64,000 nucleotides of DNA, from NCBI RefSeq assembly GCF_001194135.2, contig NC_068985.1, positions 21,328,266 to 21,392,265 of the forward strand. Reading direction: 5' to 3'. The first letter of the stretch is position 1. Each line of letters starts with the position of its first letter. The position numbers and the translations under genes were made by a program. The notes under the pieces are model-generated. The model made no database searches. It was not told where the DNA came from and saw only the letters and a list, made by a program, of their open reading frames with translations. Below are positions 37,231 to 61,923 of the stretch, piece after piece. Origin of the DNA: Octopus bimaculoides. Taxonomy: Eukaryota.

Positions 37231-37382
37231 TTATTCATACATGCAGCAGGTCTGCAAAAGCCCAACTAAATACTGCAGTATTATGGCTGCCAGTAGACTT
37301 AGAATGCTCACTTGTTGTACTTGTTGGCTAGAGGTCTGTCTTGGTGTTATTGCACTCTGCTCAGTCTTCACCTCAGCAGTAT
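37231..37382 (-). CDS. Orphan secreted/membrane-anchored protein, last coding exon 5 (DTAEVKTEQSAITPRQTSSQQVQQVSILSLLAAIILQYLVGLLQTCCMYE*)
   Basis: Strong acceptor tttctttttctattgctag, phase 1 matching exon 4; S/T/Q stalk then hydrophobic tail; AATAAA overlaps the stop, another near 37090. Confidence 0.7.
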
Positions 37383-38216
37383 CTAGCAATAGAAAAAGAA
37401 ATTGCTCTTCTAAGGTCAACAATAGAATCATTATGTCAAGAAAATACATATATATTTATCTATTTATTTATTTATTTATGTGTTTCAGCCAAGTGGCTGC
37501 AGTCTTTTTTTTTTTTTTTTCATGAATATAGAAACAGATTAAAATATTTCTAACTCCTTATCTTTGCTTAAGTCTGTTTGATTTTTGTTTGCATTTATTC
37601 CTTTTATAAAGGTTCCCAATTATGAATTGGCAATTTTAGTTATCAACTCATCTATAGTAAAATTTAGGAAAGTACTTACTGTATGTAATAGTTTAAAAGC
37701 TACCAGCAGATAGTATTATTTCATTTCTCACAGGGTTTATAGAAATAATCATTGGATTTTGCTTGGACTGTATTATATTAAATCTCTGCTTTTATATTCA
37801 CAGTATGTTTTGAGCTAAGAATAGAGATCTAAATAAGCACATGATATCCCCTAACAGCCAGTTAGGAGATAATCATTTCTTCATAATATTTGGTGGGTTT
37901 TGAAGTTTGAATTTGAAATTAAAGAAAAAGGATGCATAAAATAGACTTTTTTATTGCTTATGTTTGTGTACACCCCCACACATCAAGTCAATTGTTTTAA
38001 TCAATTAATCTAATTTTTCAGTACCTTTCATTGTTTTTTTTACAAATGTTTCTATATAGAAAGTTACTGCAGGGGAATCAAGCAATGGCTACAGCCCTAC
38101 TTCCACTGATGATGGTTAAGAAGCCAGAAACTTTTGAAGTTATTTCCCTTCCTTCCTCAGCCTAAGAATAATGTTAATTAATCCTTAACATATTTTTTTC
38201 TAGTTCTCATGTGTAA

Positions 38217-38432
38217 CCCTTTAGCATTCAAATTATTTTGTCAAATGTAATGGTTATTTATTCACATTATTTTGAATTAATTATGTATCATCCCATAGCT
38301 TTGAAGTTTCAATGATGTAATGGTTTAGTTTTAGAATGTAGGATAGGTATGTGACAGGTTGGATCTTGCTGGTTTGAACATAAAACAGATAAAGTATTTG
38401 GGCCAGATATGGCCAGTTTAAATGCGAAAGGG
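38217..38432. mobile_element. piggyBac-type MITE
   Basis: TIR ccctttagcattcaaa / tttaaatgcgaaaggg; degraded TTAA flanks (gtaa/ctaa); homologous to 41526-41730. Confidence 0.65.
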
Positions 38433-38615
38433 CTAACCCTATTATTTCTGATGTTGAAAACATTGGAAATAATCAAACCCTCTTTGTTATTATAAAGACA
38501 TGCAGTCAGTGCTTCTTTATAAAGTTCTTCATTTAAAATTTTTCTTGTCCTGCATATTCTTACATTACCATTCTTAACCATCTACATAAATTCTGCTTTG
38601 CCTAAATATCATCTA

Positions 38616-39892
38616 TTGGGTCATCCCATAAATAATGCAGTTTTTTTTTTCAATTGCATGAACTAAAAGTTGGAGGGGGCAGGAAAAACTACCTGCTTCA
38701 ACCTACTATAAAAGCAAGTAGTAATTTTACTTTGTACTTATTCTTAGTGCAAGTTTTGAAGAGTACAGTTCGATTTTAACAGTTATTTTTCAAAGCTATA
38801 ATGGAAGTGACAGGGGCGCGTATTCGGCATATTTTGCTTTATGAGTTCAATAAAGGTAACAATGCAATGGAAAGTGCAAGGAATATTAATGCAGTATGTG
38901 GTGATCAGACAATAAGTATAAGCCAGTGTCAACAGTGGTTCCAGAAATTCCGAGCCGGAAACTACAGCCTAGAAGACAAGCCTCATTCTGGAAGATCTGT
39001 ACAGCTTCATGAGGACGTCCTGCAAACCCTAGTGGAACAAAATCCCATTGTAACTGTTGAGGAACTAGTAGAAAAGCTTGGATTTGGTCATTCGCCCATT
39101 CATCAACACCTGTGTGCCATCAGAAAAGTCAGCAAATTGGGTCAATGGGTTCCTCATAAACTTTCCAAGTCTAATCATGTGCAAAGAGTGAATATGTGCT
39201 CTTCTTTGCTGTCACATCTCATGAATGAACCTTATTTGGCCCAAATAGTGACTGGTAACGAAAAGTGGATTCTCTATAAAAATGTTCAGTGCCAAAGACA
39301 GTGGGTAGGGGAAGGAGAAACGCTTGCACTGCAGACTAAAGGTCTTCACCCACATAGGATGTTGTGATCTGTTTGGTGAGATAAGAAAGGTTTAGTCTAC
39401 TTTGAACTTTTGAACCCAAACCAAACAATAACAAAGGAGATCTACTGTGAGCAGCTTGAGTGGCTTAAGTCAGCACTTAAATGACCATCTTTGGTTTCAA
39501 GACAAAAGGTATTCTTCTATCAGGATAATGCTCGGCCACATACAGCAAGGATGACATTTCAAAGGCTGGAGCAATTTGAATAGGAAACGATGCCCCACCC
39601 ACCATATTCACTGGACATTGCCCCATCTGATTATCATTTATTCCACAGTCTTCAAAATCATTTGAACAGAAAAAATATGAATTCTGTAGATGAGGTCAGA
39701 ACAGTACAGGAGGAGTATTTTTCATCACAGACAAGTGAAATTTGGAAGAAGGGCCTTGCAAATCTACCAGATAGATGGAAGAGAATTGTAGAAAATGAAG
39801 GAGAGTATATTTTAGATTTTAAAAAAACTTTATCTTACTTTTGAAAAATAAAAGAGGTATAAAAAAAACACATTATTTATGGGATGACCCAA
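38616..39892 (+). mobile_element. Full-length mariner transposon (1277 bp)
   Basis: TIR ttgggtcatcccataaataatg / cattatttatgggatgacccaa with TA TSD on both sides. Confidence 0.95.
38801..39844 (+). pseudogene. Mariner transposase pseudogene (DD34D)
   Basis: WVPHKL, TGNEKW (first catalytic D to N), QDNARPH and YSLDIAPSDYHLF with 34-aa spacing; one reading frame with four in-frame stops. Confidence 0.92.
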
Positions 39893-40339
39893 TATTTTTA
39901 TCATGCCCACACCTTTATATAATCTCTTAAATATCTTCATCATCCACCTAGGCCATAGTACTTATCTCATTTCTATAGATATCTTTTGGGTTTTTATATC
40001 CTCATTATTATATTCATAGTATGCTAGACCTTAAATTGAAAACTTCCTTTTTGGCAACGGTATGCTCGCTCCCAAAATTCTTACCTCACTAAAATGCCTA
40101 ATCACGAAGCTCTATTTCATGTGAAATAAATTTTAAATATTGGTTTCAAATTTTGGCACTTAGCCAGCAAGTTTGGAGAAAGGATAAAATCATTTACATT
40201 GACCCCAGTTCTCGACTGGTACTTATTTCATTGAACCTGAAAGGATGAAAGGCAAAGTCAACCTCAACAGAATTTTAAAATTAATTCTAAATATTAACGA
40301 TTCATTGCTATAGATTACATTTATAACTTCTGTTCTAAA

Positions 40340-40628
40340 CTACTTTTTTCTCTTTTTAAGCCTGGTGTTTATTCTATCATTTTCTTTTGTCGAACCACTA
40401 AGTTACAAGGACATAAATAGATCAATACTGGCTATCAAGCAATGATGGAGGACAAACACACACACACACACACACTTCTTTCAGTTTCTATCTACCACAT
40501 CCACTTATAAGGTTTTGGTTGACCCAAGGTCATAGTAGAAGACATTTGCCCAAGGTGCCACACTGTGGGACTGAACCCAGAATCATATGGTTGGGAAGAA
40601 AGCTTCTTAGCACACAGCCATGCCTGCA
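40340..40628 (-). mobile_element. Family A SINE
   Basis: Reverse complement of head and body motifs. Confidence 0.75.
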
Positions 40629-41525
40629 CCTTTTTTTTTTTTTTTTTTTTAATCTTACCTCTATTCAGTTTTATAACCCCAGTATCATCATATTTCATTT
40701 CTTGATTTCTATGTATCTAAACATTTCACATGTTGAGCAGTCATCAAGCTTTCCTTTGGTTGTTGTTTTGATCCAGTCATACATTTTACATTGCAAATAT
40801 TCATGTATCAACTCCTTTATTTATTACTTTGTAACTTTGTATTTCATTTTCTCTATCTATGTAGGTATGCTTCACACATTTTTTGGCATCTTTGTTTATA
40901 CATTTAAGAGATTCATTTGTAGGAAGAAAGTGGAATGACAATGTGCACTTTACTTTCATACCTAGATGTCATCTGCATACCTCTTCTATTTTTCCTTCAT
41001 TCCATACTTTTTTCTCTCATCACTTGTCAGACCATTTATGATTGCTTGAATATTTTTACCCTCAAATAGGGTAAATAGCTACTTTTAGCTTCTATTAAAA
41101 CATTTCTTTCCCTCCACTATACTACCATTTCTCAGCTGGCAGTGACATGTAATAAACTACTCGTCTCTTTGTTACCAGTCACATTCTTCAATAGGTTTTT
41201 TTTTTCTTCTTTTGGTGGGGGGGGGGGTTCTTTTGTACTGCATTATACAACTTATTTTATTTCTATATNNNNNNNNNNTTGATTAGCAAAGTCATTAAAC
41301 AAAAAATCATTTTCTTCATTAATGTATTTGGTTCAATTTCTTAATTACTAGTTCTCTGCAAAATAATAATGTAACTAACTAGAAAGATAATCCAATTAAA
41401 ATGCTCTTTCTATAATACCTCTGTACCTGTAAGATGAAGTTAAAAAATATAGGATATCAGTTTTTCAGTTTGTTAATTCTTTTGTGTATTTATAGCTATG
41501 ATTTGTCTGTGAAGAGAATGATAAG

Positions 41526-41730
41526 CCCTTTTGCATTCTGATTACTCTGTCAAATGCAATGCTAATTTATTCACATTGTTTTGAATTTAATCTTGTAGCT
41601 TCAAGATTTAAATGATGTGATTGTTTATTTTTAAAATGACATTGTAGGGTGAGAGGCCAGATCAGGCCAGTTTGAACATAAAACAAGTAGAATATTTAGG
41701 CCAGATATGATCGGTTTAAATACAAAAGTG
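41526..41730. mobile_element. piggyBac-type MITE, second copy
   Basis: cccttttgcattc...tttaaatacaaaagtg|ttaa; homologous to 38217-38432. Confidence 0.6.
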
Positions 41731-42560: not shown

Positions 42561-45045
42561 TGTAACAAGTATAAAACACTAGCAACAAATAAATTTGTAT
42601 TGGATGTACAGATAGTCTAATTTTTATCTAATTAGCTTGTTCACCTCTTTATTGTATCAAAAGTTTCAAATGAGGTTTAGTTAGATCTTCTAAACAAATT
42701 ACTTTGTATATTCATATTTTTGTGAATAAACTATAGCAGTTCACCAGCTTGGCAATAAGCCCACTGGCTGTAACTAATAAAAGAATAAATCAGAAATAAC
42801 TGAGATTATTAAGAATCATGTTCTTTGGAATGTGAAGAAGGTAAGGCAAATGAATTTCATTAACGAGCCAGTTACCTTATATATAATTCACCTGACAGCA
42901 TATATACCATTGATAACCTTAAAAGAACTACATATTATTTATTTAGAAGCCAACTTATTCAAGAAGGTATCATTTTTATCAATTGCAATTTCTTAATTTT
43001 TGTTTTAGCTGATTATACTGAATCTAAATTCATGGATCATTTTGGTACAAAATAATATTCAATATGGTCAAGTTTATATTGTAACTAAGTGATTTACTGA
43101 ATAGTTTACATGAGAAAACACAAAAACTAGCTTATTTTATGAGTCTAGAACTGTTACATATACAAGGATTGCATTTTGTAATCATTAGTAAGAATGTGAC
43201 GCCATTAGATTCTGTGCCCAATTTCCATCATCCCCTCACTCCCTCCTATCCAATCTATTCTGCTACTATAACATCTGGTGCCTCTGTTATGACCAGTTTG
43301 TCTGTCTCTTTGATTAATTGCTTGAGTCTTCATTCTGGTATCTTGAAATACTGGGGATAGAAAGTCCTTATTACATTAATGATTAATGAGAAAAAAAATT
43401 CTTTTTTTTTTTTCTTAAATTTGCTTTTTAGCAAGCTATTTCCAGTATATTTTGGTCAAGCAACAATTTGGGCGAAAATAAAATCAATTTTCACAAATTG
43501 AAGTACAATATATATACAGTTCATGCAATATATATGAAATAAGTTACAAAAGACAAAATCCGATATAAATATGTTCACACACATGGATACATAGCAACAA
43601 GATTTCTTTTAGATATCAGGAGCTAAAATAGTCAGGAAAGCAAAACACAAATTTTCTTTTGTTTTCATTCATTAATTTTTTAGTTCACTTTTGTTTTCAG
43701 TTATTTCTTCCAACTTTGTAACTGAATGAGAGAGAGAGAAAGAGACATTGGACATATTCCTGTTCTGTTTCATTCTTTTTTTCCTCTTTTTCTCCATTTT
43801 ATTTAAAATTAATGAGATTGCATGTTGATAACATTTTTTAGGAAAAATGTCAAAAATACTTGAGAGATGTTTAAGATTTTAAAGTAACAAATGTTTGAAT
43901 GATATTTAATTTTCATATCTGTGTCTATCCAATTCTCCGAACTGGAATAAATTAAATTTGTTTTCCAAACCATCTTGCTCCATATTTCTTTGAAAACCTT
44001 TTCCTTCATTTCTAGTCCTTCAAGGATCGTCACCATTCTCAGTAAATCTCCTCCACTTTCAGTGCCTGTAATTTTCAATACTAGCCTCATGTATTGTAAG
44101 TGTGCACATGTATGCATACCCCACCCGCGCACACACCCTTCTTCCTCTCTTTCTCCCCCCCCCTCTCTCTCTCTGGCATGCTTTTAAAAATTTATACTGG
44201 AATTCAATACATCATCCATTGTTTTATATTTCATTTTCACTTATTCATAATTTTACAAACATGTCTTCTGGTTTGCTCTTTATACGGGTTCTGCTTTGCT
44301 CATTATCACATGATGGTGATGTTTAGCCTCAAGGTCAGCTCTGACTCAGTAAACTTATGAAGTCGATGACATTCCATCCATGGTAATCCCATATTTTTTC
44401 AATATGTCCAATGTGTCCTTTATTTAAGATGAAATGATATGTTTTTGAATAGATTTGGTTGCTATTTCTAATAGATAGTAACTGCATGGAGGCTCTTTCA
44501 TAGCTCATTTGACATGATGGATAGTGTTGGTATTGAGTGTGAAGGCAATACTGCCAGATTCCTTCTCAAACAGTCGAGCTGACTGGATATTTTGCAATTG
44601 TAAAAGGCTTTCTTTGGAGAGGTGGGGGAGCATGATTTTTTTTTTTCTTTCTCTCTTTGTTTCTTCCTTTGTTTCTAAGTTTAAAACTTCACAATAAAGC
44701 TGTTTATACTTAGCTCAGAAATGTCTGTTTAACCTTTACCTAAAACTTAAATGTTTTTTTCCCCTCTCCACTTATCTCTGATTTCCTATCTTCTCATCTT
44801 TTGTTTGCTTTATTTATAGTAAAAGAAGCATACAATAGCTCAATAAACCTTCCACTTTTTACACTTTTCTCAACTTGCAAAGGATAGAAGCTGGCTAAAA
44901 CAATTGTAAAACAACAGTCTTGATCATTGAAATAGCCATTGTATTTATACGACCTTCAGTATATCTACAATTCGAGCTCTATAACATCACCCAGAAATAC
45001 TTTCTTTCATATATATAACCACACTAGACCCTGTGACTCTTTCTT

Positions 45046-45091
<46 letters not shown>

Positions 45092-45779
45092 ACTCACACA
45101 CACACATAGAGCATCATAGCTGAATCAAATATTTTTACTCCTGTAGTAACAAATATATTTTACCTCTTAAAATTTAAAAATAACAAGAAACAAGTAATAA
45201 CTCTTTCTGCTATAAGAACAGTTATACTGATGCCATTGCTCAGCTGTCACTTATTTTACTGATCCCAAAAGGATAAAGGGCAAAGTAAGTAGATATTAGT
45301 GGAATTTTCAAAGAACTGCTGCTAAGCATTTTGTTGACTGTGCTTAACAATTCTGCCTTTTTAGAAACCATCCTTTTTAGAAACAAGTAGTAATAAAATA
45401 TCTTTGCTCTGTACAATGCACTTTTTTCAAGAGAATGGTTCAGTTCCCAATATCTTTAAGTGACAAAATAAAGGTATAGTTTAACCCCTTTTAACTTGGA
45501 ACCATAAACTGAGCCAAATACAAATGTCTCAGCAATCTGTGGACCCATATACACACAAACTAACACAAGCCACAAATTTTCATGGAAGAGCATAATCAAT
45601 TGAATTGATCTCATTTAAGTAAATAGTATTTATTATGTCAATCATTGAGAGATGAACAGCAAAGTTAGCCATAACAGGATTTGAACTCAGAAAGAAGTGA
45701 AAGAAATACAGCAAAAATGATATTAGCTATAAGTGACTGACTACCATTGTTCTCTCAGAGCTATGTGCATGAACATTTA

Positions 45780-46274: not shown

Positions 46275-46480
46275 TGTTTTCTATGCTGCAATCATTATAA
46301 TTATATTTATCATACATTCATTGCACAGATAATTTTATCAGTAGGAAAAATTGCACAATATAAGATTTCTGTGCATACTGATTATTTAGACATTAGAAGG
46401 AACATTGGTGAGTACTAAAATCATTGCATCATTCTGAAATTTAGACAGATAGTGTTAATATGGAAAGCTGAGACATATAC

Positions 46481-46589
46481 CTGATGTATAGTGGTAGCTG
46501 GAGCAGAGGTTTGTACAAAGACTTGAAGCTTGTTGTCTGCAGCTTGTTAAATTTTGTATAAGAAAAGACCCTATATAAACTTTAAACAT
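46481..46589 (-). CDS. Orphan gene exon 4 (MFKVYIGSFLIQNLTSCRQQASSLCTNLCSSYHYTS)
   Basis: 109 nt, phase 0 to 1; acceptor ttacatcag, donor CAG|GTATAT; open and chains in frame with exons 3 and 5. Confidence 0.6.
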
Positions 46590-46897
46590 CTGATGTAATG
46601 TAAATTTAATCTAAACATCTAATCTGATGTAAATTTTAAACACTTCAATGCTTCAAAAAAAAAATGTTAAGAAATTCCGCATAAATGATCCTTGTATCTC
46701 AACCAAGTTATTCTTATTCTAACATTTGAAGAATTAAAAGTAGAGATATTTAAGAAAATGCAAGAAGCTTAAGCTTTCCCAGACAAATAATAAAGAAAAC
46801 ATTGAATTAGTCAAATATTTGACCAGGCACAGAAATAAACTATTTTCTGAAAATTAGTTTAATTTTCAGCAGTGACATGAAGCTCATATAGAATTAC

Positions 46898-46973
46898 CTC
46901 CATAACAGGAAATGCTTTATATCCATACTTAGAACTCAAATAACAGTGCACAATTTTGTATCTAATAACATTT
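46898..46973 (-). CDS. Orphan gene exon 3 (KNVIRYKIVHCYLSSKYGYKAFPVME)
   Basis: 76 nt, phase 2 to 0; acceptor gttctcttttctcag, donor GAG|GTAATT; only the required frame is open. Confidence 0.6.
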
Positions 46974-48730
46974 CTGAGAAAAGAGAACATCTCTGCTTAA
47001 CATGCCATTCTGACAGTTCATTTATTTGGTGAAGGCTTTATAATGCATATGTTCTTTGATGGGGATTATTTCACCCAAACATGATGATAAAGTTCAAGTT
47101 AACCTTAGCTGTTACAATTTATACCAAAATAGGTCTACAGCAACACACAGCACAGTAATAATAATGCTTTAGAATGTTGCAATAGTTGAAGATCCCAAAT
47201 GTGAAGCATATGAAACATAAAGCATCTCAGTAACAGATGCTGAAGATGAACATTGTTAAATGATTTTTGATGATAATGATTTACTTGTTTGCTGTATTCT
47301 GTTTAATTTAAAATAAATTCATTTTATTTTAGTCTGTTCTTATTGTTTCTAAACCTAAAATGCTTCCCCAATACCACTCTCCATATTTATCCAGAATACA
47401 TTTTTATTATTATAGCTTCCCCTTCAGATACCGTGTTGTATTACTTTGTTATCTCTTGGACTGCTTTACCTGTTCTGCTGGTAGGTATTGCAGAATTCCA
47501 AAGATAGCATTGTTTTCTTATGCATTACTTTAGTTCAAAGAAAGACCCCCATATATTTGTGTGCAGTGTGTGTGAAGGAATAAAAATAGATTACTCTTTT
47601 ACTGGTTCCATCCAGTTGGTGGAGCACAAATTTCAACAAAAGTATGAATTTTCAGTTGTCCATCATCATTATCATTTAATGTCTGGTTTCCTTGCTGGTA
47701 TAGGTTGGAGGTTTGATAGGGTCTGAGGAATTGACTGTGTCTGCTTTGGCATGGTTTCCATAGCTTTATGCTCTTCCTAATGCCAACCACTTTATAGTGT
47801 GTACTGGGCCCTTTTCTTTTTTTTTTTTATATATTTCCATGTCACCAGCATTATTGATGATTGCCTTCTAACTTGCAAAGCTAAGGATTTACAGTGCTCC
47901 CTATAACTAAGAGAGATCCTTGGTAGAGGGTTGTGAGATAGTAGGTAAAAGAAGAATGGAGGAGTATGGCAGGAAGGAAGGAAGGGATTAGTGCCAGGAT
48001 TGAGAAAAATGAAAGGATAGAGTTGAAAAGGCAATTGGATGGGTTGTTAGGGAGTGGGAGTAATATGTTACTCAGAATTTTAAGATACTGGTTTGTTTGT
48101 CTCTGCATGTAATGAGGTTTGAGAAGGAGTAAAGGCAATAGAATTGATGGCAGAACATCACTGATATTTGTTTTATTAGCCCTTGTTAGATGAAAGACTA
48201 AGTCAAATCTACTGAGATTTGAACTCTCTAATATAGAGATACAAAACTTAATGCTGTAAACCATTTTTGTCCAACATTCTACTTTTATTACCAACTGCTT
48301 GCTTTTCAGAATTTTAAACATTGGCCTCTGTTAAATTTATATTTAATTATTCTCAGTCTTGTGAATACAAAACTAATCTTAAAATGTTTTATTGCAAAAT
48401 TCCACAAATGATTATTTCATGAATGATCAAATAAAACTAGTTTACTTGTTTTATCAATTTTCTCTGGTTTGTTAGACTTGAAATTGAGAGAAAAATAATC
48501 TACATTTGAAAAAAAAAAAGTTTTCCTTGTAGGGGTTACACCCCTACAAAGAATTAGAAATGTACCGAGTCAAAAATGAATAGATATAGAAGCCTATCAC
48601 ACTGTTGGCCTCTTTCTCTTCTTTTATGCTAATAATGTCAGTGGAAATAATACAAATATCTTAACTCCTATTTGCTTTTTTTTTTTTTGTTCTTTGCCTG
48701 TTGATGGCTATTTCCCATTAGATAAAACCA

Positions 48731-48930
48731 ACATTATTTACATTTGAAGGATATTTGTCCTCATCTTGTTTGTTGTTAACACAACGTTTTGGCTGATATA
48801 CCCTCCAGCCTTCATCAGGTGTCTTGCGGAAATTTCGAACCTGGGTTCTCATTCCTAAGGTATTTTCGATGTTATTATTATTATTATTCAGGTCACTGCC
48901 TGGAATCGAACTCGAAATCTTGAGGTTCGT
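48731..48930 (-). mobile_element. Second copy of the tRNA-headed hammerhead element (5'-truncated)
   Basis: Colinear with 32015-32205; B box GAGTTCGATTCC retained; abuts an RTE tail. Confidence 0.85.
48778..48823 (-). ncRNA. Minimal hammerhead ribozyme with G12A core mutation (predicted inactive)
   Basis: GACAC-CUGAUGA-AGGCUG(GAGGGUAUAU)CAGCC-AAAA-CGUUGUGUU: perfect stem II but GAAA changed to AAAA. Confidence 0.75.
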
Positions 48931-50395
48931 AGATGGCAAGCCAGAGGACTGCCTCAAGCTTTGTCTGCTTTGGCATGGTTTCTATGGCTGGATACCCTTC
49001 CTAACACCAACCACTTGACACAGTGTACTGAGTACTTTTTATATGGCACCAGCACTAGTGAGGTCACCAAGTAACTTGCAAGGCAAGCCCCCCCCCCTCA
49101 ACTGAGAAGGGTTTGTATTGAGTTTGGTGGCTTTATGCCAGTTGATGAGCAACAGAAACAAGTGTCTTCTAGGGGAGATACCTGATTGCCCCAGTTGGAA
49201 AAGAGGATGGTGGTGAAGATAGAATTTACATGAACATAGGATCCAAAATGTTATCTAAGTCCAGGATTATTTTTAACACAGCAAGTTATTAGACAACCAG
49301 TTAAGGCTCTGAACATACATATCTTACCATGACAAAATTGGTATCAGAGAAGCATTCATTGCAACTACTTCACTTATCCAAAAAATGAAGTAAGCTCCTT
49401 TGTACTTCATATCCCTGGTAATTTCATCTTACTGAGGATATGTGGAAATAGAGAAGCTAGTGAGGTGGCATTGTTACTTTCAAATACTTAAAAGTTTACA
49501 TGTACAAATGGTTGAAAGTATATTTTATTTGTACACTCCATAACAGAGAAGGGGAAGTAGTGTTTTCCTGAAAAGGTAATTTGTTGTAAAGAGAGACACC
49601 CATGTGATCACCAATATTAGACACACACAACTGGTCGTTGCATCTTGCAACCTCAAATGAGAGACATCATCATCATCATTACCCTCAGTTAAATATCCAC
49701 TTTTTCATGCTTATAATAGGTCAAACAGAATTTGTGGAGGCAGATTTTTGTAAGGTGAGATACCCATTTTGTTATCAATCTTCACCTGTTTCCAAGCAAG
49801 GTAATATTTTCCCAGAGCAAGACATATTTTCCCATGGAAGACTGAAAACAACAAACCTTACTTGTATGATGGCCATGTACATTTACAATCATCACATGAT
49901 GTCTAGAAAAGAATTCGCATAAACACACACACGCACACATGTATGTGTGTGTGTGAGTGTATATGTATACAAAAAGGTTTCTTTTCCATTTCTGTCTACC
50001 AAATCCACAGTAGTAAAAGACACCGAAGGTGCCATCTAGTGGGACTGAAACCAAGATGCATGATCTAAAAGCAAACTTCTTAACTACACAACTACACATA
50101 AAATTAAGCTACCTGAATGTTTCAAGTCTTTCATAAACTGGAATTAAAGCAGTGGGGTGGAAGTGTGTATTTGTGTTGTCAGCAGCAATAATCTACATTC
50201 ATCTAGAAGCATGAAGGTGTGGATATAGAATGAGAGAATAAGGCTTCTTATCCAGTTGTAACTGTACCAAAATTGCTCCTTCAAATGAAAAAATGCAAGA
50301 AAATATACATTTTTATGTGCATATCAATTTGTAGACCTTGCGTAAATAGAATGAGAAAAGAGAAACACACAAATCTGAAAATATTTCTGACTCAC

Positions 50396-50522
50396 TTGCA
50401 GAGTTTGGTGTAATTGGTGTCATTGACTATTTCGCTTGTATTTGACAGGACTAATCTTTCTGTCTGACAACCTGTCAATGCTTGATGGATCTGAGCTGTG
50501 TTACACTGGCCTTTGATAAGAA
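50396..50522 (-). CDS. Orphan gene exon 2 (VLIKGQCNTAQIHQALTGCQTERLVLSNTSEIVNDTNYTKLC)
   Basis: 127 nt, phase 1 to 2; excellent acceptor ttttttttcttctgcag and donor CAA|GTGAGT; one open frame; three N-X-S/T sequons. Confidence 0.8.
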
Positions 50523-50611
50523 CTGCAGAAGAAAAAAAATTGACTTAAATTTCTGCTTTGACTAATGTACCATATGAAAACATTTATGAATTTTATAGAA
50601 ATACTAATAAC

Positions 50612-50673
<62 letters not shown>

Positions 50674-53600
50674 CTGAATTCTTTTTTCTATGTATTGAGT
50701 ACACTTTTTCACTTTTGTTTATAAGTTGTAACATTTGAATGTGTGTGTGTGTACCTTTATCACACTCATATATATACATATATACATTGGAATGTTTTCA
50801 TTTGCCAAGCTAATCTATCAAACTGCTTGAACAACCCTCAATTCTAAATGCAAATATAGAATATCCATTGTATTGGTACAGACTGAATTTCTGTGTTTTA
50901 ATTATGTTCTGTCCATAACCTTCCTATCTATTATGAGAGATGTTGTCATATGATCTCTATTATAGAAATAATACAGTGTGTTAAGGAAGGGATTAGATAC
51001 TACTTAAAATAGCTGGAGCTTGTACACAGAAACCCTACCTTAGTTCAATAGTTAAGAAGACAATTATTTCACATGATACTTAAGTTACTCCTAGTAAGAA
51101 AGATAGGATAGTGTTTAATTGCTTTTGTTATTTAGCCCCNNNNNNNNNNNNNNNATCAGATATTGTGATCAAAGATATTCTAGATGTGACCATCTTATCT
51201 TTTTCAAACAATGCAAAAAAAAAAAAAAAAACTTTGGTTACTCAAAGCATGTACTTGTAGAATACCAAGTGAAGTGGTCAAATTCAGGAGAATTCCCTGT
51301 ATTTTATTTTATTTTAGATTGGCATCTTATTGTCTGTGGTGGTAGTCAGACTTTGTTTGAGACAGGCATTCTGCCAGAATGTTATCTATTATCTGTTCAT
51401 ATTAACCATTGGTACAACTCCACACTCAAGCTCTATTATCAGCTAAAATAGCTATTTATATTTTCATGGTATGAAGTTTTATCTTTGGCTGTAATTATAA
51501 GGATTTCCATTTTGGGATATATTAAGCTGAAATTTATTTTATACATTATTACTGAGCAATTATGATCTGACTAAAGTATAATGTTAAGTCATCTGAATCT
51601 CACTATTTCTACAGCTAGAATACATTTTTTTCTGGTATATATATTTCTATTGTCCCTTAGTTGTTTAGTTCTAATGAATGAATGCACACAGATGCATGGA
51701 TCAATTTACGTAATATTGCATTGTTTTATTAATTAATTACTTGTAATGTAATCTAGTTATTCCTACCTAGAAAGGGTATTTTATTCATTTATCAACAAAA
51801 ACTAGGCAACATTTACTAATACTAAGAAAACAACCAGTTCAAAGTATAGCTTCTTATGAATCTCATACTTAAGCAAAGCTTCTTGTGGTTCCTTCCAGGT
51901 AAAGATACTTGTAACATTCATGTCTTCTTCAGTTGCATTAGTAATGTAAGTTGAATAAAATAGTTGAAACTGAGAACCAACTTTACAGACTTGGCTCACG
52001 AGATGCTTACCTTTTTATACTGTAGTGTTTGCTTTGAAAATATTAAATGTTTCTAAAGAACCTGACCATTAAAGGAATCTTTCATAAGTTCCTTTGTCAT
52101 TATATTACAGTGTTCTTTTTAAAAAAAAAGCTGTTCTCCTCAAGAGACAGTTGATAAAAATCCATATCTTATGTCAACACTTTAAACATTTTTTTGCTTT
52201 GAAGAAACTCTATTCCAGAGTAGTGGATGTTGTGTTGATGCAGCTCATATTTCAATGAGAATTAGCTTTGGAAGAATGTCACTTTCTCTCAGATGTTTTT
52301 TTTTTCTTTTTACAAGGATAAAGAATCAAGAGTAAAAAAAATACTGATAACCAGATAAGGAAAAATAGAAAAATGCTATCAAAATAGCACCAATGCTCAG
52401 ATAATATAAATGCATACATAGTAAGTCCATAAAATAAGGCACATGAAAACTACATAGTAATACCATCTCTAAACTCCTCCACATTGAAATTGTTTTGTAG
52501 CAGTGTGGGAGAAATGTGGACATAAAATAAGTTAATGAATGCTGATAAAAGTTTGAAAGAAACAGAAAATATATTGGTGGAAGAAATAGATTGAAATGGC
52601 AAATCCCAGAATAAAAATGCATTTTATGTTATGTCTTTTTAATGTTCTTTAAACATCACCATCATCAACATATATCTAATGCCAAGAGTCTTCAATATTG
52701 CTCAGTCGGTTGGCAGATACTGTCTTCTCACTAGTTATTACAAACTTTACTTCCTTGGCTTTTAACACTTTCTTTTAAACAGGACATGGAATGATCTGCC
52801 AAATGTCTTAAGTATGCTACAATAACTGTTTGTTGAGGTTACTTATTGAGTATTTGTATTAAATTAATTAAACTTTTTTTAATTTTTCTTTCAGAATGTC
52901 AGGAGAGATGGGTAAAATAAAGTAACACAGTCTACACAATAAGCTATGTGTAAATAGATCAGCTTGATGTCCCTAATCATTTGAATAAGGATGGTTTTCT
53001 TTTTCAAAAGTGAGAGGTATTGGTTAAAGTTCTTAGCATTAGAAAATAACTTTGATCNNNNNNNNNNGAGAGAATGGTGGCATTAAGCACACTCATCAAC
53101 AGAAACCTCTTAGGAAATCATTTCTAAAAGCCATGTTATCATTGACCTTTCTCTTGACTAGATATCTTGTACAGAAATGATGTTGATTAATCATAATAAA
53201 TATACTATGTATTGGCAAAGAGTTCTTCTAAAGAAAGAGAGCAAAAAATTCATTACATTTATTGTTGTATTTATTTTCATTTTAATTCTTAACAATTTCT
53301 TTTTTTAATTTATTTATTTTTTCTTTTTTGTTCTTTCAATCAAAACTGCCCATAAATTGACCTTTTGCAAGAGTAACTTTAATTGGCATTTAATTTAAAT
53401 GGAAATTACTATCAGTAAGTACTGCTTTATTAAAATGAAACAGACTGACTGCTCTGAAAGAAAATCTGTTTTTAAGAATTTCTCTTAAGATGTATATCAG
53501 AATTCCTCATTCAGCATCAAATTATTTTTGAAAGTAACACATTACAGTGAATTAATTCCCTGAACCATTGAGTCTTACGCAAAGATAACAGATCAAACTG

Positions 53601-53846
53601 TCCTACATAGGATATTTTTACTTTTAATCAACATCATACCTGTACAGAACATCTAAGCAAAAGAAAACTCATAATGATTATGATACTGTTGGTTGCAATT
53701 TCCTGAGACATTTGGGTGCTTTTAATGTCACTATTCTTTCATCTACAAAATGAAGGCAATTGATAATACATCTAAATGAGAGAAAAGTTACTTTGTCCAG
53801 TGAAAAACATTAGCAACACTTTCTTTCTCTTAAAAAAGAAAACCTT

Positions 53847-54408
53847 GGATCTATTTTAAAACGGGGGCCACATTTTTCATTAATGTTTTACGTAGTGTTT
53901 TTGGTACGGAACGACTTTCAAACTTCGTATACTTATCTATTTTGTGTTATAGAACAGAAAAATGTTTTTGTATTCGAATTTATTTCATGTAAAAAATTGT
54001 CCTATTTCGATAATTTTAACCAATCACTGACAAGTATTCAGTTGTTTATATTTACTCCTTTGGCTGATTAAGCGATGTAAAGCGTATTTAATCTCCATAC
54101 CTTCGTTTTATTTGCTTTTTTCATTTTAAATTTGCTTTAACCCTAACCCTAAGGTTAGGGTTAGGGTTAATTGTTTCAGAATCGTTTGTTTATGTAGTCG
54201 GCACTTAATGTATATCGGCTGAATGGACGTCAGTGATTGGTTGAAATTACAGAAATACGACAACTTTAACATGTAATAACTTATGGATTTCTTTTTTTTT
54301 TAAGAAGACTAAGAGAAAAAGATGTTTTATATGACACATTCTACCAGTGTTCCAAGTTTCAAAGTGTTTCGTTAATGAAAAATGTGGCCCCCGTTTTAAA
54401 AAAGATCC
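53847..54408. mobile_element. 562-bp GG-terminal MITE with 8-bp TSD and internal telomeric-repeat palindrome
   Basis: ~37-bp TIR ggatctattttaaaacgggggccacatttttcattaa; TSD AAAACCTT at 53839-53846 and 54409-54416; ttaaccctaaccctaa-gg-ttagggttagggttaa at 54137-54170. Confidence 0.9.
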
Positions 54409-55019
54409 AAAACCTTTCTTAATCAGACAATGATGAACATTATGTTGAACTGTATACAGACAGCTGACTATGTAGCTTGTGTTATTTCATTTTCCCTCTT
54501 TCCTCCACTCTTTGAAACAAAATTCTTCTCATAAAATTAAACTAACATCTTAGTATAGCATAGAATTGATTAACAGATATCAAGCAAAATTCTCATGTAA
54601 GTTAGTTCTGAAATCTCAAATAATTAAGAATACTTTCCAAAAAAGTTAATATACATAGAATCATTGACCCATAAGTTAGCTGAAAGTTTTGAGAAAATTC
54701 TAAGAAGATTCAGAAAGGAACTGTAAAAATTTGGTTTCGTCTCCATCATGGTGATCATCATCATCGTTTTAACATCCACTTTTCTATGCTTGCATAAATT
54801 GGATGGAGTTTGAGGCAGATTTTCTATGGCTGGATGCCTTTCCTGTTACCAACTCTTAATTGTTTCCAAGCAAGATATTATTTCCCCATGGCCAGACATG
54901 TTTTTGCAGAATATTGGAAATGAATGACATTCATTTCCAGCAGTCATAATGTCAGGATAGAAACAAACATCATCATCATCATCATCATCATCATATATAT
55001 AATATATATATGTATGTGC

Positions 55020-55198
55020 ACATGCACACACACACACACATGGGCTTCTTTCAGTTCCATCTACCAAATCCTCTCATAAGGCTTTGGTCAGCCTGGGACT
55101 AGAGTAGCAGACACTTGCCCAGGATGCTACAAAGTGGACTGAGCCTGACACCATGTGATTGGGAAATGAACTTCTCCAAGACAAACCATGCCTATACC
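55020..55198 (-). mobile_element. Family A SINE 5' part
   Basis: Reverse complement of head motifs. Confidence 0.7.
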
Positions 55199-55229
55199 TA
55201 TTTTATACACACACACATGCACATAGACA

Positions 55230-55460
55230 TCATCATCATCATTATTGTTTAACGTCCATTTTTCCATGCTGGCTGGCATGGGTTGGATGGTTTGACTGAG
55301 GTCTGGAAAGCCAGCGACTGCACCAGGTTCCAATCTGATCTGGCAATGTTTCTACAGCTGGATGCCCTTCCTAACTCCAACCACTCCGAGAGTGTAGTAG
55401 GTGCTTTTTACATGCCACCGGCACAGGAGCCAGTGAGGCAGGCTTGGCATTGATCACGTT
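55230..55460 (-). mobile_element. RTE 3' tail fragment
   Basis: catcatcatcattattgtttaacgtccattttccatgctggc...ctggatgcccttcc. Confidence 0.75.
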
Positions 55461-57569
55461 CGGATATATTTATAATTGCAAGAATCTGGTGATTCCCACA
55501 TCATACTCAGTTTTTGCTCAACGTGAATTTCTATTGCGTGTAAGATCTCACTGAATTAATTACTAGTTTCGTACAAATAAATGTACTCTACAACCTGTAC
55601 TGAGTGCTTTTCATTCCATTTGGGGGAAAAAACAAAAAAATTCCAAGACATGCATTGTTGTATTCATTTGTTTATTTGTTCAATGTCCCTTTTTTTCTCG
55701 CAAGTGCCCTTAAGTGAGAGCGATTTAGTTATGTTCATAGCTTTTGTAGGCTTTCCCAGACTAACAATATTGATACAGTTAATGTTTAATGTTAACTTTT
55801 GCAAGATGACACCTCTAGGGAAAGCCTAGACAAGGAAACTGCTCCAGAGAACTGCAGTTCTGGCAAAAAGGATTGGTTAAAATGTTTAAACAGGATTTGG
55901 GGGAAGGGATGTTGAAGACCTGCTGAGAAAGTGTGATGCATCTTCATGGTACACAGCTTGCTAGCTCAGGAGAGCAGGAAGTGTTGTACTCTCAGTAAAA
56001 GAGATAGCATATTGAATGAATATAAGTCTGCATTTTACTTGGTAGAACTATTTTTGTGGTTCTAGAATGTTTGTGTGTATAGCCGAAACATAAATAGTCC
56101 TTTACTGCAAATCACATTTATGTCCTGTAAAGGATTTTTTAAAAAAATAAAAACTATCCTGAAGAAAACTTATACTTTTAGATGTCGTTTTGGTTATGTT
56201 ATAGAAATGTAGCTGCCATAGAAGACAGCAGAAATTGTGTGTTCTAAACTTTTAATAATTTGGTGAAAGTTTTACTTGTGTGTTGTTCATGAATTAGACA
56301 AGTGTTGCTGGTGTGTCTCCTCAATATCTGTATTAACTGCATCTTTATGCTATTGGATGACACTAAGTTGTTATTACAAGAAATTTTCAAGATTTTGTTC
56401 AAAGAGCTACTAACAGCGTAAAAGAAGTAATTTGAAATTCTAGCAAGAAGGCTGTGCATGCTGAAGGAAAATAAATTACAGCAGGCCCAATGAAACTGTG
56501 TGTATATGTGTGTGCATGCAAAGTGTCTGTTAGTTTCTTATATTTGAATACAGTAGCTGTTTAATCAGAGTGATAACACATATTTTAATTTTCCTTTAAA
56601 GATTTAGTTCCTTTAATCAGTATTTTTGTGAAACTCTTAAATATATTTTGTATCTAAGAAAAAAAAAAACTTTCATTCAGTAAAAATATCCAGATCTCTT
56701 TGATAATAAAAAATAGGTTTGTAGGAGGGAAAATCTGTGGTTTTAATTTCATTTCATTCAGCTGTGTAAAGATATCCAATTGAGTGACAGCTATGAAATT
56801 CAGCTACATTATATTCGTAAGGGAACAATCTGTAGTTTCATTCAGTTTTTAAGTTATGGTCACATTATTTTTATGAGCTATGTCTGGAAGATAGGGTTGT
56901 GTTTGTAATTTTCACACTCTAAGGCTAATGGAGTTTATGCCATCATTTTCCCACTTAAACTGTTGCAAATCAATGACTGCAGGAAAAACATGTGCAGAAA
57001 GGAAATTCCGGGGAATCAATGTTTTGGAGTGATTAATACTGGGTTTGGGAGATGGGCACAAATTGAATGCATCACAAAAAGGTGATGAGCTGAATGGAAT
57101 GAAAGGAGTTAGTTTTGGAGATAAATCATGTGTAAACAATGTATATCAACCATGAATCCTTCAAGGAATGTTAAGTTTGTTGATTTTTCTTCTTTGGAAA
57201 ATAAGTTTATTAGCTTCATTTGTGTTGTTCATATTGAATAAATTATATATTTTCTTGTTGGGTATGTTCTGAAAAATGCCGTTTATTTGAAAATGCTATG
57301 CATTTAATAAAAGGAACATAATAGATGATTATGAAGAAATTTAATTATTCTATTATATAATGATGGATCTATTTATGCTGGATGCTAGTATAAATTATCC
57401 ATTTTACTTTTCATCCAAACATCTTTTATAAATTTATACGATTAAAAAAATTAAAGATGATTGTAATTACATATTTTTATTATTAATTCCCTGTAAAGAG
57501 TAATAAACCCATTAATTGTTGAGGCCATTCTGCTAAGACAAAATATGATTGATGCTATGATTGTTTTAA

Positions 57570-57683
57570 CCCCTTTAAATCTTCAGAGAGAAAAGAGATT
57601 TTTTAAATTTGACTTCTCTTATTTCTTTTGAAATATGAGAAGTCAAATGAAAAATCCATTTTCTCTTTAGATGTTTAAAAGGG
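57570..57683. repeat. Fold-back with CCC...GGG termini (piggyBac-like ends)
   Basis: ttaa|ccccttta...tatttc-tttt-gaaata...taaaaggg|ttag; ~55-bp imperfect arms. Confidence 0.7.
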
Positions 57684-57966
57684 TTAGAACAAATAATAAA
57701 TGGCAACATCAATAATGTTACAAAGTTGGAACCAGAATACATTCAAGGACAACAAAGTCAATAACTACGATTATTTCTTTGATTATTTTGGGGATTTTTC
57801 CTTTCTAGTTGTTTCTTTGTTAGTTATTCTCAAATGATCCTTTGAAGCATAAATACTTCAACAATCAAGATCTCTATTTCATTATTAAACTAGATTATTG
57901 AAGTAAATGAATAGATACATCAAGACCTACTCATCATCATCATCGTTTAACGTCTACTTTCCATGC

Positions 57967-58071
57967 TAGCATGAGTTGAACGATTTGACTGAGGACTGGT
58001 GAAACCGGATGGCAACACCAGGCTCCAATCCGGTTTCACCAGTCCTCAGTCAAATCGTCCAACCCATGCTA
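57967..58071. repeat. Fold-back of an RTE 3' tail, 44-bp arms, 17-nt loop
   Basis: tagcatgagttgaacgatttgactgaggactggtgaaaccggat pairs with 58028-58071 with 2 mismatches. Confidence 0.9.
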
Positions 58072-58364
58072 AAGTTTGAATAAGAAAAAAGCAATTTATT
58101 TAACTTATCAGCATTGTAAATTGATGAAAATGCTTGAGATGAATTATTATATTGTTTTATTCAATTCTATTATTTTCTTTTTTTCTTAATCACAACCTGA
58201 GATTTCTTGTAACAACTCCGCTCCAAATACATGAGCAATATTCTATAGTGGATGACTTCTAGAGAATCACCATTTGTTTAGAACTGAAATAAAGTCATGC
58301 TTAGGTGCACAAATGTAATAGAATTCTGAAATCTCTCTAAGAGATCAACGCAGTGGTTGTACTA

Positions 58365-58562
58365 ACAAGTAATGTTCATAGCCACTTCAACATGGCTGTC
58401 CATTCAAAGGGACTTTACTGCAATTTTTTAACCCCAAGACACCATCTCCTCTAGCTGTGCATCGTTACCCAGCTAGAGGAGATATCCACTTGGGGTTAAA
58501 AAATTGCAGTAAAGTCCATTCGAATGAACAGCCATGTTGAAGTGGCTACAAACATTACTTGT
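58365..58562. repeat. Fold-back, ~93-bp arms, 12-nt loop
   Basis: acaagtaatgtt...atctcctctagctg / cagctagaggagat...aacattacttgt; 12-bp direct repeat tgtaatagaatt at 58314-58325 and 58560-58571. Confidence 0.9.
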
Positions 58563-59044
58563 AATAGAATTGAAATATATTTATATCTTACTTAGAAATG
58601 TTAATACCTGAGAACTGAATGATCTTAATATCAGCTGTTCTTTTACTCTTGCTACCTAACATTTATAGCGAAGTATACTTTTTATAAACTTTAGATTAAG
58701 ATTTGCATTCATTAAAAACCAAACCAGTTTATACACTTCAGAAATAAAGAAACTCATTTTGATACTAAAATCAAGATCACTCATATGTGTGTGTATACAT
58801 CATCATCATCTGTTTTCTATGTTGGCATGAGTTAGACAGTTTGGCAGGTGCTGGCAAACCAGTGAGCTGCACCAGGCTCCAGTTGTCTGTTTTGGCATGG
58901 TTTCTACAACTGGATGCCCTTCCTAATGCCAACCACTTTACATAGTGTAGTGGGTACTTTTTACGTGACAATTGGAGTCTGGACAGCTTTACATCAAACT
59001 ATCCAACTCATGCCAGCATGGAAAACGGATGTTAAATGACGATG

Positions 59045-59363
59045 ATGTATGTATGAATGTATGTATGTATGAATGAATGTATGTATTTATGTATGTATGT
59101 ATGTATGTATGTATGTGTTGTGTCGATGCCCCCAGGCGAAGAAGTAGGATCTTCCAAGACATATAATAGGGGTAGTCTGGCCGTGGTAGGAGTGTTGAGT
59201 AGCAGTTGTGTAGAGATCATCCAAAGGTGCTAGATAGCAGTAGCATTGAGACATAACAGTATGTATGTAGGTATGTATATGTATGCATGAATGAATGAAT
59301 GTATATATGTATGTGTATATGTATATGTTTGTATGAATATATATATGTGTGTGTGTATATATG

Positions 59364-59396
<33 letters not shown>

Positions 59397-59399
59397 GGA

Positions 59400-59436
<37 letters not shown>
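59045..59436. repeat. Compound microsatellites (TATG)n, (TA)n, (GA)n
   Basis: Direct reading; interrupted by ~130 bp of other sequence. Confidence 0.85.
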
Positions 59437-59439
<3 letters not shown>

Positions 59440-60013
59440 CAAATGTAAAATGTTTTCAAAGATATTCTTTCAAGTTGTGTAATATATAAAATGTATTTTC
59501 GATGACATAATCATCTTAATTCCATGGAAAGTTATTGGTTTCAAAAATCATTGCCTGGAGATTCAATATAATCAATACCATCTTCACAGAGGAATTTCTG
59601 CCAGTTTTCAAAGATAAATCATTTATTTCAATAACTGATTTTCTTTTTTCAATTGGATTCTTAATTATTACAAACTTTAAAGTAGTCTAAATATTTATGT
59701 AAAATACTTTCTTAATGAATTTGTTTACATGTATCAGATCAGATATAAAATTTATGAATAGAAATTTTAATCAAGCTAAAAAAATTTTAAAAATTAAAAA
59801 ATCAAATAAATATAATTAACTTTGGTTTGTTGTCCATTACTTCCTGATTAATATAAGTTTAATAATAATTTTGCCATGTCTATTTCCTAAAGTAATTGTG
59901 TACTGTAGAATCAAATAGTACATTCAATATATTTTGCCTTATTATGCTTATCCTGTTCATAAAACAAATAAGTACATTTTTATAGAAGTATTTTTTGAAA
60001 AATTCTTGGTGCA

Positions 60014-60601
60014 AGCATGGCGGTGTGGTAAGAAGTTTGCTTCCCAATTATATGGTCCCACTGTGTGGCACCTTGAGCAAGTATCTTCTACTATAGCCGG
60101 AGCCAACACTGGTTTTCAAGCAGTGGTGGAAGAAACACAGACACAAACACACACACACATACACACAGATATATATATATATATATATACGATGGTTTTC
60201 TTTCAGCTTCCATCTACCAAATCTACTCACAAGGCTTTGGTTGGCCTGAGGCTATAATAGAAGACACTTGCCCAAGGTGCCATGTGGTGGAACTGAACCT
60301 GGAACCATGTGGTTGGGAAGTAAACTTCTTACACCCAGGCTTTGTGAGTGGATTTGGTACACAGAAACTGAAGGAAGCCCATCATATATGTGTGTTTGTG
60401 TTCATGTTTGTCACCCCCACCATTGTTTGACAACTGATGTTGGCTTGTTTACATCCCTGTGGTTTAGCATCAACCAAAAGAAACTAAATAGAATAAGTAC
60501 TAGGCTTTAAAAAATAAGTACCAGGGTGGATTTGTTTGACTAAATTTTCAAGACAGTGCCCCAACATGGCTGCAGTCCAATAACTGAAGCAAGTAAAAGA
60601 T
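60014..60601 (+). mobile_element. Family A SINE interrupted by an inverted SINE segment (60103-60340)
   Basis: Outer head ends ...gccaac and resumes tttgtgagtgg; inner segment is the reverse complement of 61150-61388. Confidence 0.8.
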
Positions 60602-61149
60602 CATGAAGAAGTCTATACATATCCTTAAAGTTGCGTATAATATTTATATCTATTTTAGTTTTACAATTAAACCTTGGGAGAGGCATTATGCCGGTAATAA
60701 ACACGTGCACTGGTTCAGTCCTTTATTTATTTATAAACAGTATTTAGAATCTTGCACACCAAATACACATACGAAATATTTTAGTTTTATTTTCTTCCAA
60801 AAATATAACTTCTTACTATTTTATTACCACATTTTAATCTTTCTTAAAGGGTTTCCCTTATCTGTTTCTCATAAAATAACTATACACCAATGCAAAATAT
60901 AAAGCTCTACATATATATTTATACTAAACATTGTCAACTTCGACCTTGAAAATAAGTATCTCTGAGTACACTCATTGTGATCACTTAATACAATGTTTTC
61001 CTGTGGGGGAAAAAAAAGTATTGATGTTTACTTACATAGAAAAACATAAAAAAGAACTTTCATTTCTATTGATTTCAGTCTTTGGACTGTGCCCATGCTG
61101 GGGTACCACCTTCAAGGCTTTCAGTTAATTATATCAACCCAGTACTTTG

Positions 61150-61560
61150 CCTGGGTGTAAGAAGTTTACTTCCCAACCACATGGTTCCAGGTTCAGTTCC
61201 ACTACATGGCACCTTGGGCAAGTGTCTTCTATTCTAGCCTCGGGCCAACCAAAGCCTTGTGAGTGGATTTGGTAGATGGAAGCTGAAAGAAACCCGTCAT
61301 ATATATATTTATATATATATATATATATATATATCTCTGTCTGTCTGTCTTTATTTTTTCCACCACCACTGCTTGAAAACCAGTGTTGGTGTGTTTGCAT
61401 CCCCATAACTTAGCAGTTCAGCAAAAGAGACTAAAAGAATAAGTAGCAGGCTTTAAAAAATAAGTACTGGGGTCAATTCATTTGACTAAAAATTCAAGGT
61501 GGTTCCCCAGCATGGCTGCAGTCTAATGACTGGAACAAGTAAAAGATAAGATAAAAGATG
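61150..61560 (+). mobile_element. Family A SINE, slightly 5'-truncated
   Basis: Body and tail complete; preceded by an inverted SINE tail at ~61060-61145. Confidence 0.8.
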
Positions 61561-61871
61561 AACCCTAGAACTCTTAAGACCGGACTTTAACCTGGTTTCC
61601 ACGATGATATATAACTGAGATTTCAAAATTCCTTAAAATACTCATTTACAGATGAGTGGAATGGAGCAATGTGAAAGAAGTATTTTCATCAAGAACACAA
61701 CACAGCCCAATCTAGGAATTGAAATCATGCTCTTATGATCATGAGTGTAACACCCTAACCACTAGGCCAGGTCCCTTCCTATGTATATATAGAGAGAAAA
61801 AACCTAAATTAACAAGCATTTTATCATTATTAATAATAATTGTGATTGTTGTAGAAAAAAAAGGAACTTAC

Positions 61872-61923
61872 CACAGCAAAGGCAGATGGCAAAAATATAA
61901 ATAACTCCTTTTAATACCGTCAT
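61872..61923 (-). CDS. Orphan gene coding exon 1: signal peptide MTVLKGVIYIFAICLCC
   Basis: ATG at 61923, 52 nt, consensus donor G|GTAAGT, phase 1 joins exon 2 to give a classical signal peptide ending VLIKG/QC. Confidence 0.8.

Follow-up and report, generated by a model that had tools for sequence, protein, structure and literature searches.

The question raised by this locus is whether the minus strand of a 64,000-nucleotide (nt) stretch of Octopus bimaculoides DNA (assembly GCF_001194135.2, contig NC_068985.1, positions 21,328,266 to 21,392,265 of the forward strand; hereafter the window, with positions counted from its first letter) carries a gene between 61923 and 37231 and, if it does, what kind of protein that gene encodes. 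A preliminary description made from the sequence alone had chained five short segments of this interval into a gene for an orphan secreted or membrane-anchored protein of 171 amino acids (aa), a gene that is, as was said there, not visible as a long open reading frame (ORF). The gene is real, a point on which we have next to no doubt, but it consists of four exons spread over 24.7 kb of the minus strand, which carry a 456-nt ORF encoding a 151-aa precursor. By sequence similarity the product belongs to an unnamed family of molluscs and annelids, and is thus not an orphan. The best overall explanation, which we consider a probable one, is a four-exon nested gene whose product would be a binding module related to RGM_N, the N-terminal domain of RGMs (repulsive guidance molecules), tethered to the membrane by glycosylphosphatidylinositol (GPI).

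Exon structure and transcript evidence

The coding parts of the four exons, and the two segments of the preliminary description that turned out to be intronic, are listed below (a slash marks the exon border).

61872..61923, minus strand: exon 1, coding part; 52 nt, ATG at 61923, encoding the predicted signal peptide MTVLKGVIYIFAICLCC plus 1 nt; donor G/GTAAGT
50396..50522, minus strand: exon 2; 127 nt, encoding the predicted signal peptide end, C24, C36, three sequons and C59
41772..41896, minus strand: exon 3 (the true one); 125 nt, AFLNYIKCVEPRLTGCKSSSLRGITIVKKTYSKEPYHCMLN, encoding C68, C76 and C98; acceptor CAG/, donor G/GTTAGT
37231..37382, minus strand: exon 4, coding part; 152 nt, encoding the fourth sequon, an S/T/Q stalk and a hydrophobic C-terminal tail; stop codon TAA at 37233-37231
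46898..46973, minus strand: 'exon 3' of the preliminary description, not an exon (intron); zero RNA cover in X2, X3, X28 and X29, and skipped by the 50396-41896 joint
46481..46589, minus strand: 'exon 4' of the preliminary description, not an exon (intron); zero RNA cover in X2, X3, X28 and X29

The transcribed sequence is longer at both ends: the 5' untranslated region (UTR) upstream of exon 1 reaches at least 62060, and probably about 62143, and the 3' UTR of exon 4 extends below 37231. When contigs from RNA runs of the same organism were aligned with the locus, exon 2 (contigs X2, X28, X29 and X17) and the last exon (X2, X3 and X6) were both present. Position 50396 is joined directly to 41896 in contigs X28 (229 nt) and X29 (234 nt), and 41772 is joined to 37382 in X2 and X3, both of which end at the 37382 acceptor with a loose end at 37383 that is the reverse complement of the 3' end of exon 3 (...AGTAAAGAACCCTACCACTGCATGTTGAAC). 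The joint between exons 1 and 2 is provided by an RNA contig of a sister species, X7 (417 nt), which runs from beyond 62060 through exon 1, covering 62060..61877 and continuing with the opening 25 nt of exon 2 (TTCTTATCAAAGGCCAGTGTAACAC). This joint was not found in RNA of the window's own species (zero cover in four Logan runs), where exon 1 was represented by an unspliced contig only, in X46, and by about 0 reads in three deep raw-read runs. Across the four corrected exons only one reading frame is open. Runs X2, X3 and X6, but not X1, carry C for A at 37264 (plus strand), a synonymous change in codon 141 (GTT>GTG, Val) that is probably a polymorphism.

One observation on the transcripts weighs against a purely coding gene. 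In the own-species contigs X17 and X29 the start of exon 2 (50522) is preceded, across a splice joint, by an upstream exon other than exon 1 (...ATGTTGATACACAATATTGAACACAG), and because this upstream exon carries an in-frame stop codon (TGA), some transcripts of the gene may be non-coding. Searches of the window and of the 47-kb Octopus sinensis locus found this exon in neither; it may be an alternative first exon that lies far away, or belong to a non-coding isoform.

How, then, did the earlier reading of the locus go astray? It was right in placing a multi-exon gene on the minus strand, and its first, second and last exons are confirmed by spliced RNA. Both of its middle exons are false, and the true third exon was missed, leaving the correct model three exons removed from the ab initio one. 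The five segments do chain in phase, with GT..AG borders, into 516 nt encoding 171 aa, of which the first 60 and the last 50 residues are correct; residues 61-121 stem from the two false exons and align to nothing in the orthologues. A five-exon gene for a 171-aa orphan with seven ectodomain cysteines can also appeal to the sole RNA contig at its fourth exon, an unspliced, low-depth contig from X1 (46481-46830) that happens to end at 46481, but that contig is collinear through the claimed acceptor. Against such a gene stand the RNA joints that bypass both middle segments, the absence of any cover over 46400-47060 in the four runs with spliced contigs, the lack of a significant collinear match to either segment in the locus of Argonauta, and orthologues of 151 aa that align without them. 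Nor is the phase agreement informative. Between the donor of exon 2 and the acceptor of the last exon lie 13 kb with 2,851 stop-free AG..GT segments of 40-250 nt; these yield 359 single-exon chains and about 161,000 two-exon chains that satisfy the phases, so that a chain in phase is to be expected here by chance. The five-exon model is refuted as the main isoform, and the probability that we leave to it is negligible. More generally, chaining exons by compatible phase cannot be relied upon in cephalopod introns of 34% GC unless RNA or a distant orthologue is at hand.

The preliminary description had also allowed for an exon hidden in an assembly gap. The window, which is AT-rich (GC 0.336), contains seven short N gaps, and the three flagged gaps are spliced across by the transcripts of the gene. 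Measured against the O. sinensis locus, which is gap-free and has collinear flanks, about 40 nt are missing at 41269-41278, about 3 nt at 51140-51154 and about 29 nt at 53058-53067, all of them intronic. With at most about 40 nt missing, the hidden exon is rejected.

Orthologues and selection

Two database proteins correspond to the 151-aa product: LOC115211634 of O. sinensis ('uncharacterized protein', 151 aa; 96% identity, 100% coverage) and Ahia01_000517400 of Argonauta hians (hypothetical protein; 66% identity), both of them uncharacterised predictions. The unique GT-AG solution recovers both proteins, with exon lengths of 52/127/125/152 nt in O. sinensis and (75+52)/127/125/155 nt in Argonauta, exon 3 being 125 nt long in all three species. 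The Argonauta protein (locus 10001-10078) has 26 residues ahead of the conserved signal peptide; since a start at Met27 would yield 151 aa, as in the octopuses, this N-terminal extension is probably an annotation artefact. None of the proteins returned by a search with the 151-aa product came from the window's own species, and the gene appears to be absent from that species' protein set.

O. sinensis is too close to separate exons from introns, all of which are 92-98% identical, the false exons included, and Argonauta was used instead. Collinear conserved blocks in the Argonauta locus comprise exon 1 with its upstream sequence, exon 2 (78% identity), exon 3 (76% at the nt and 81% at the aa level) and, more weakly, the last exon. 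The N-terminus of the protein is identical in O. sinensis and conserved in Argonauta. A tblastx match of the peptide of the discarded fourth segment to Argonauta (37%, 35 aa) lay on the wrong strand, out of collinear order and beside exon 1, and was dismissed as noise.

The gene is under purifying selection. A ratio of nonsynonymous to synonymous substitution rates (dN/dS, or omega), which the preliminary description had suggested as a check, was computed for the corrected model and is 0.13 relative to O. sinensis. In the comparison with Argonauta the domain shows a dN of 0.11 with saturated synonymous sites, and the stalk and tail together an omega of about 0.65.

An unnamed mollusc and annelid family

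In a profile search, 1.84 billion representative proteins yielded six additional remote relatives (E 3e-13 to 6e-6), from the gastropods Patella, Batillaria, Littorina, Physella and Lymnaea and the annelid Ridgeia. All six are labelled 'uncharacterized', and no database record that was found gives the family a name. Together with the two octopus proteins and that of Argonauta they form the set of nine members used in what follows. The earlier label of orphan gives way to relatives in a second octopus, an argonaut, five gastropod genera and an annelid.

The layout is common to all nine members: a signal peptide, a six-cysteine domain with a conserved sequon before the third cysteine (C3), a stalk and a hydrophobic C-terminus. 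The cysteine spacing of the family is 11(12)-19/22/25-8-7-21, and all six cysteines are among its 12 invariant positions, while the stalk is variable, being either acidic or rich in S/T.

Predicted protein and membrane anchoring

The architecture first proposed for the protein (signal peptide, Cys-rich N-glycosylated ectodomain, S/T/Q stalk and hydrophobic C-terminal tail) is supported in the corrected product. We infer that residues 1-22 form a cleaved signal peptide, with an h-region of mean hydropathy 2.7 followed by LIKG/QC. The ectodomain cysteines lie at positions 24, 36, 59, 68, 76 and 98, which gives a spacing of 11-22-8-7-21. They replace the seven that had been counted before, an odd number that came from the false exons, and with six invariant cysteines in the domain the free or dimerising cysteine once proposed is not needed. 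Three of the four sequons named earlier (NTS45, NDT51 and NYT54) are kept; NLT came from the false exons, and the corrected product has NDT101 as its fourth.

On this basis the product is likely to be a secreted, GPI-anchored glycoprotein. Residues from about 23 to 100 would fold into a three-helix bundle held by three disulfides between the six invariant cysteines and would carry an N-glycan at a conserved site immediately ahead of the third, and residues from about 101 to 125 would form a disordered S/T/Q stalk. The hydrophobic segment that follows would act as a GPI-attachment signal with its omega site near S119/S120, so that the mature protein, about 97 aa long, would be displayed on the outside of the plasma membrane.

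The C-terminus might instead span the membrane as one helix and end in a short cytoplasmic tail (QTCCMYE) that is palmitoylated; the preliminary description had allowed for a transmembrane segment in pointing to a CC motif. In the window's protein the hydrophobic stretch (19-20 residues) does have 6-7 polar residues after it, including two neighbouring cysteines; such an ending is atypical of a GPI signal, though tolerated, and this weighs against GPI anchoring, as does the fact that signal peptide and GPI signal were judged from hydropathy and family comparison only. The CC motif, however, is GC in O. sinensis and absent from Argonauta and elsewhere in the family, and the hydrophobic C-terminus has 0-9 trailing residues across all nine members, the other six ending 0-5 residues past it without a cytoplasmic domain. 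The near-neutral evolution of stalk and tail is, furthermore, what would be expected of a cleaved signal. Since the CC motif is not retained and all nine members share a layout that ends in a hydrophobic tail, a GPI signal is favoured over a palmitoylated transmembrane tail, which we regard as quite improbable.

A probable distant relationship to the RGM N-terminal domain

Is the six-cysteine domain related to anything known? The family had not been recognised when the locus was first described, and Pfam finds nothing meaningful in either the 171-aa or the corrected 151-aa protein. Taken as a family, the nine members show a weak but consistent link to RGM_N, of which we think their domain is probably a distant homologue. 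Sub-threshold Pfam RGM_N matches occur in five of the nine (13.8-21.4 bits; the best, at 21.4 bits, has E 3e-4), and the RGMA N-domain (4uhy_C) is the only PDB match of the family profile at E<=10 (E 0.053). The N-domain sequences of RGMA, RGMB and HJV used here were verified against PDB chains. RGMA has a cysteine spacing of 4-22-8-7-21, the last four intervals being identical to those of the octopus protein. Profile comparison by hhalign of the family with RGM_N gives probabilities of 74-86% (P 5e-6 to 3e-5); with a 14-sequence RGM_N alignment the values are 80%, P 1.4e-5 and a score of 31.1, to be set against 17.3 for a reversed alignment and a maximum of 18.5 over 200 column-shuffled alignments. 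The family hidden Markov model (HMM) scores RGMA_N at 19.3 bits and RGMB_N at 16.3 bits, neither of which is reached by any of 1000 Cys-preserving shuffles.

AlphaFold2 was unusable on an alignment of the three orthologues, with a predicted local distance difference test (pLDDT) score of 38, and the nine-sequence alignment was used instead; it gives pLDDT 75-90 over residues 21-100, where three long helices span 26-49, 55-73 and 78-92, and leaves the stalk disordered. The RGM_N fold is a three-alpha-helix bundle (PMC7354924). In a Foldseek search of 350,542 PDB chains with the predicted model, ranks 1 and 2 are RGMB N-domains (E 0.7-1.2, template modelling score 0.41-0.49). The PDB holds no neuritin structure, and the fold search is blind to that protein.

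Several points weigh against homology. Taken one by one, the RGM_N tests all fall short of conventional thresholds: all nine members lie below the Pfam gathering threshold of 24.2 bits, the octopus protein itself being without a match; the Foldseek match is a weak one; and the hhalign probability is 80%, not above 95%, over an alignment that covers only C2-C5. The residues of RGMB that contact BMP/GDF are Arg100-Gly101, Leu103 and His106 (PMC7354924), and equivalents of Leu103 and His106 are not conserved in the family alignment; after C5 the octopus protein reads KSSSLRG and the gastropod ones [KQ]G[EA]A[LK]xAF, with Leu and His not at the aligned positions.

These same points can be turned into a different account, in which the family is a lineage-specific group of Cys-rich helical surface proteins of molluscs and annelids that resembles RGM_N by convergence of disulfide-locked bundles. 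All RGM_N scores being sub-threshold, identity to RGM_N being only 15-22%, the first cysteine interval being 11 where RGMA has 4, and the BMP-contact residues not being kept are all as this account would have it. It is harder to reconcile with four independent methods each of which, if weakly, places RGM_N first (among 24,736 Pfam families, 177,635 PDB sequences and the PDB chains of the fold search, and in hhalign), with similarity above that of both the Cys-preserving shuffles and the column-shuffled controls, and with the identity of four of the five cysteine intervals. We consider convergence unlikely, while still giving it some weight.

A second alternative relates the family to vertebrate neuritin (CPG15/NRN1), a neuronal protein, either as its lophotrochozoan counterpart or with all three groups sharing an ancient domain. 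Neuritin has the same architecture, a signal peptide, one six-cysteine domain of about 80 aa and a GPI signal in about 140-165 aa, and its cysteines are in register (9-24-8-7-27 in NRN1, verified by Pfam, vs 11-22-8-7-21). The family HMM scores NRN1 at 10.9 bits, a value reached by one of 1000 Cys-preserving shuffles, and hhalign places C1-C5 in register. On the other side, not one of the family's nine proteins is matched at E<=10 by the Pfam NRN1 model (PF15056), though that model gives human NRN1 134 bits and NRN1L 85 bits; the hhalign score against NRN1 plus NRN1L (17.4, probability 3.4%) falls inside the shuffled range (maximum 19.6); and RGM_N scores clearly higher in every test. The neuritin-like architecture is a resemblance of design and not evidence of NRN1-family membership, and a neuritin affinity seems to us improbable, a little more so than convergence. 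A literature search on the locus name LOC115211634, on a neuritin-RGM link and on invertebrate neuritin found nothing relevant.

Distant homology to RGM_N, which we continue to prefer, does not make the product an RGM. The RGM C-terminal domain (PF06534) has no match in any of the nine members, and the 151-aa protein ends in its stalk and hydrophobic tail directly after the six-cysteine domain. A homologue search seeded with RGMA returned, among the matches listed, vertebrate RGMAs only, and real RGMAs carry PF06535 together with PF06534. The family would represent at most a new architecture built on an RGM_N-like domain.

Genomic setting

The gene lies antisense within an intron of a MINDY-type deubiquitinase gene, upstream of the following exon.

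62413..62636, plus strand: internal exon of the MINDY-type deubiquitinase host gene; Pfam MINDY_DUB 42.4 bits, donor GA/GTGAGT

Exon 1 of the nested gene is about 490 nt from this exon, which has 87-90% aa identity to Argonauta and lies within a conserved block at 61866-62719. The nesting inside the MINDY gene is kept in O. sinensis and Argonauta.

The last intron of the nested gene contains a Mos1/mariner-type transposase remnant (38801-39367, plus strand; Pfam HTH_48 69.7 bits). Five intronic stretches (50605-50640, 55092-55755, 48452-49115, 44468-45131 and 53764-54427) show RNA word depths of 10^3-10^5 and numerous 'joints' between repeats; they belong to repeat families that are dispersed and highly expressed, and are not parts of the gene.

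Possible function and comparison with known systems

What might such a protein do? RGMs bind their BMP/GDF ligands through RGM_N, and the product would most likely be a module tethered to the membrane that binds a secreted signalling ligand, possibly of the TGF-beta/BMP family, and serves as its co-receptor or decoy. The BMP/GDF-contact residues are not conserved in the family, and binding of a BMP/GDF-type ligand by the octopus protein, proposed by analogy with RGMs, is doubtful. More speculative again is a lophotrochozoan-wide, stand-alone 'mini-RGM', that is, a GPI-anchored RGM N-domain by itself that would serve as a co-receptor or decoy for the TGF-beta superfamily without Neogenin coupling, and that may also link RGM_N to vertebrate neuritin; we would give this proposal only a slim chance. 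If the RGM_N link holds, a domain that is otherwise known only as the N-terminal part of RGMs would here occur in a new architecture, and molluscs and annelids would have in this small protein a candidate modulator of BMP/GDF-type signalling that is tractable to study and may also be a bridge to neuritin. The gene itself had already been predicted in a sister species, and what is proposed about function draws on remote homology that is weak.

Among known systems, neuritin (NRN1 and NRN1L; PF15056) has central cysteine intervals of 8 and 7, identical to those of the octopus family, whereas its outer intervals are 9/24/27 as opposed to 11/22/21. Neuritin is known from vertebrates, and the family of the octopus protein from molluscs and an annelid.

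The RGMs (RGMA, RGMB and RGMC-hemojuvelin, with DRAG-1 in C. elegans; N-terminal domain PF06535, PDB 4uhy, 4uhz and 6z3j) differ from the octopus protein in length (about 430-450 aa vs 151 aa), in the first cysteine interval (4 in RGMA vs 11), in having an RGD/RGN loop, of which the octopus protein has none, and in their C-terminal domain PF06534, a partial vWD fold with a GDPH autocleavage site and the Neogenin-binding surface, which the octopus protein lacks. RGMs are, on the other hand, GPI-anchored surface glycoproteins, an anchor that is predicted here as well, and their N-domain resembles that of the family in its size of about 75 aa, its six cysteines and its three helices (predicted in our case). 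RGM_N and the family also have in common the motif around C3-C5, LCxAhxxYxxCxxxxxxxC[KR]G.

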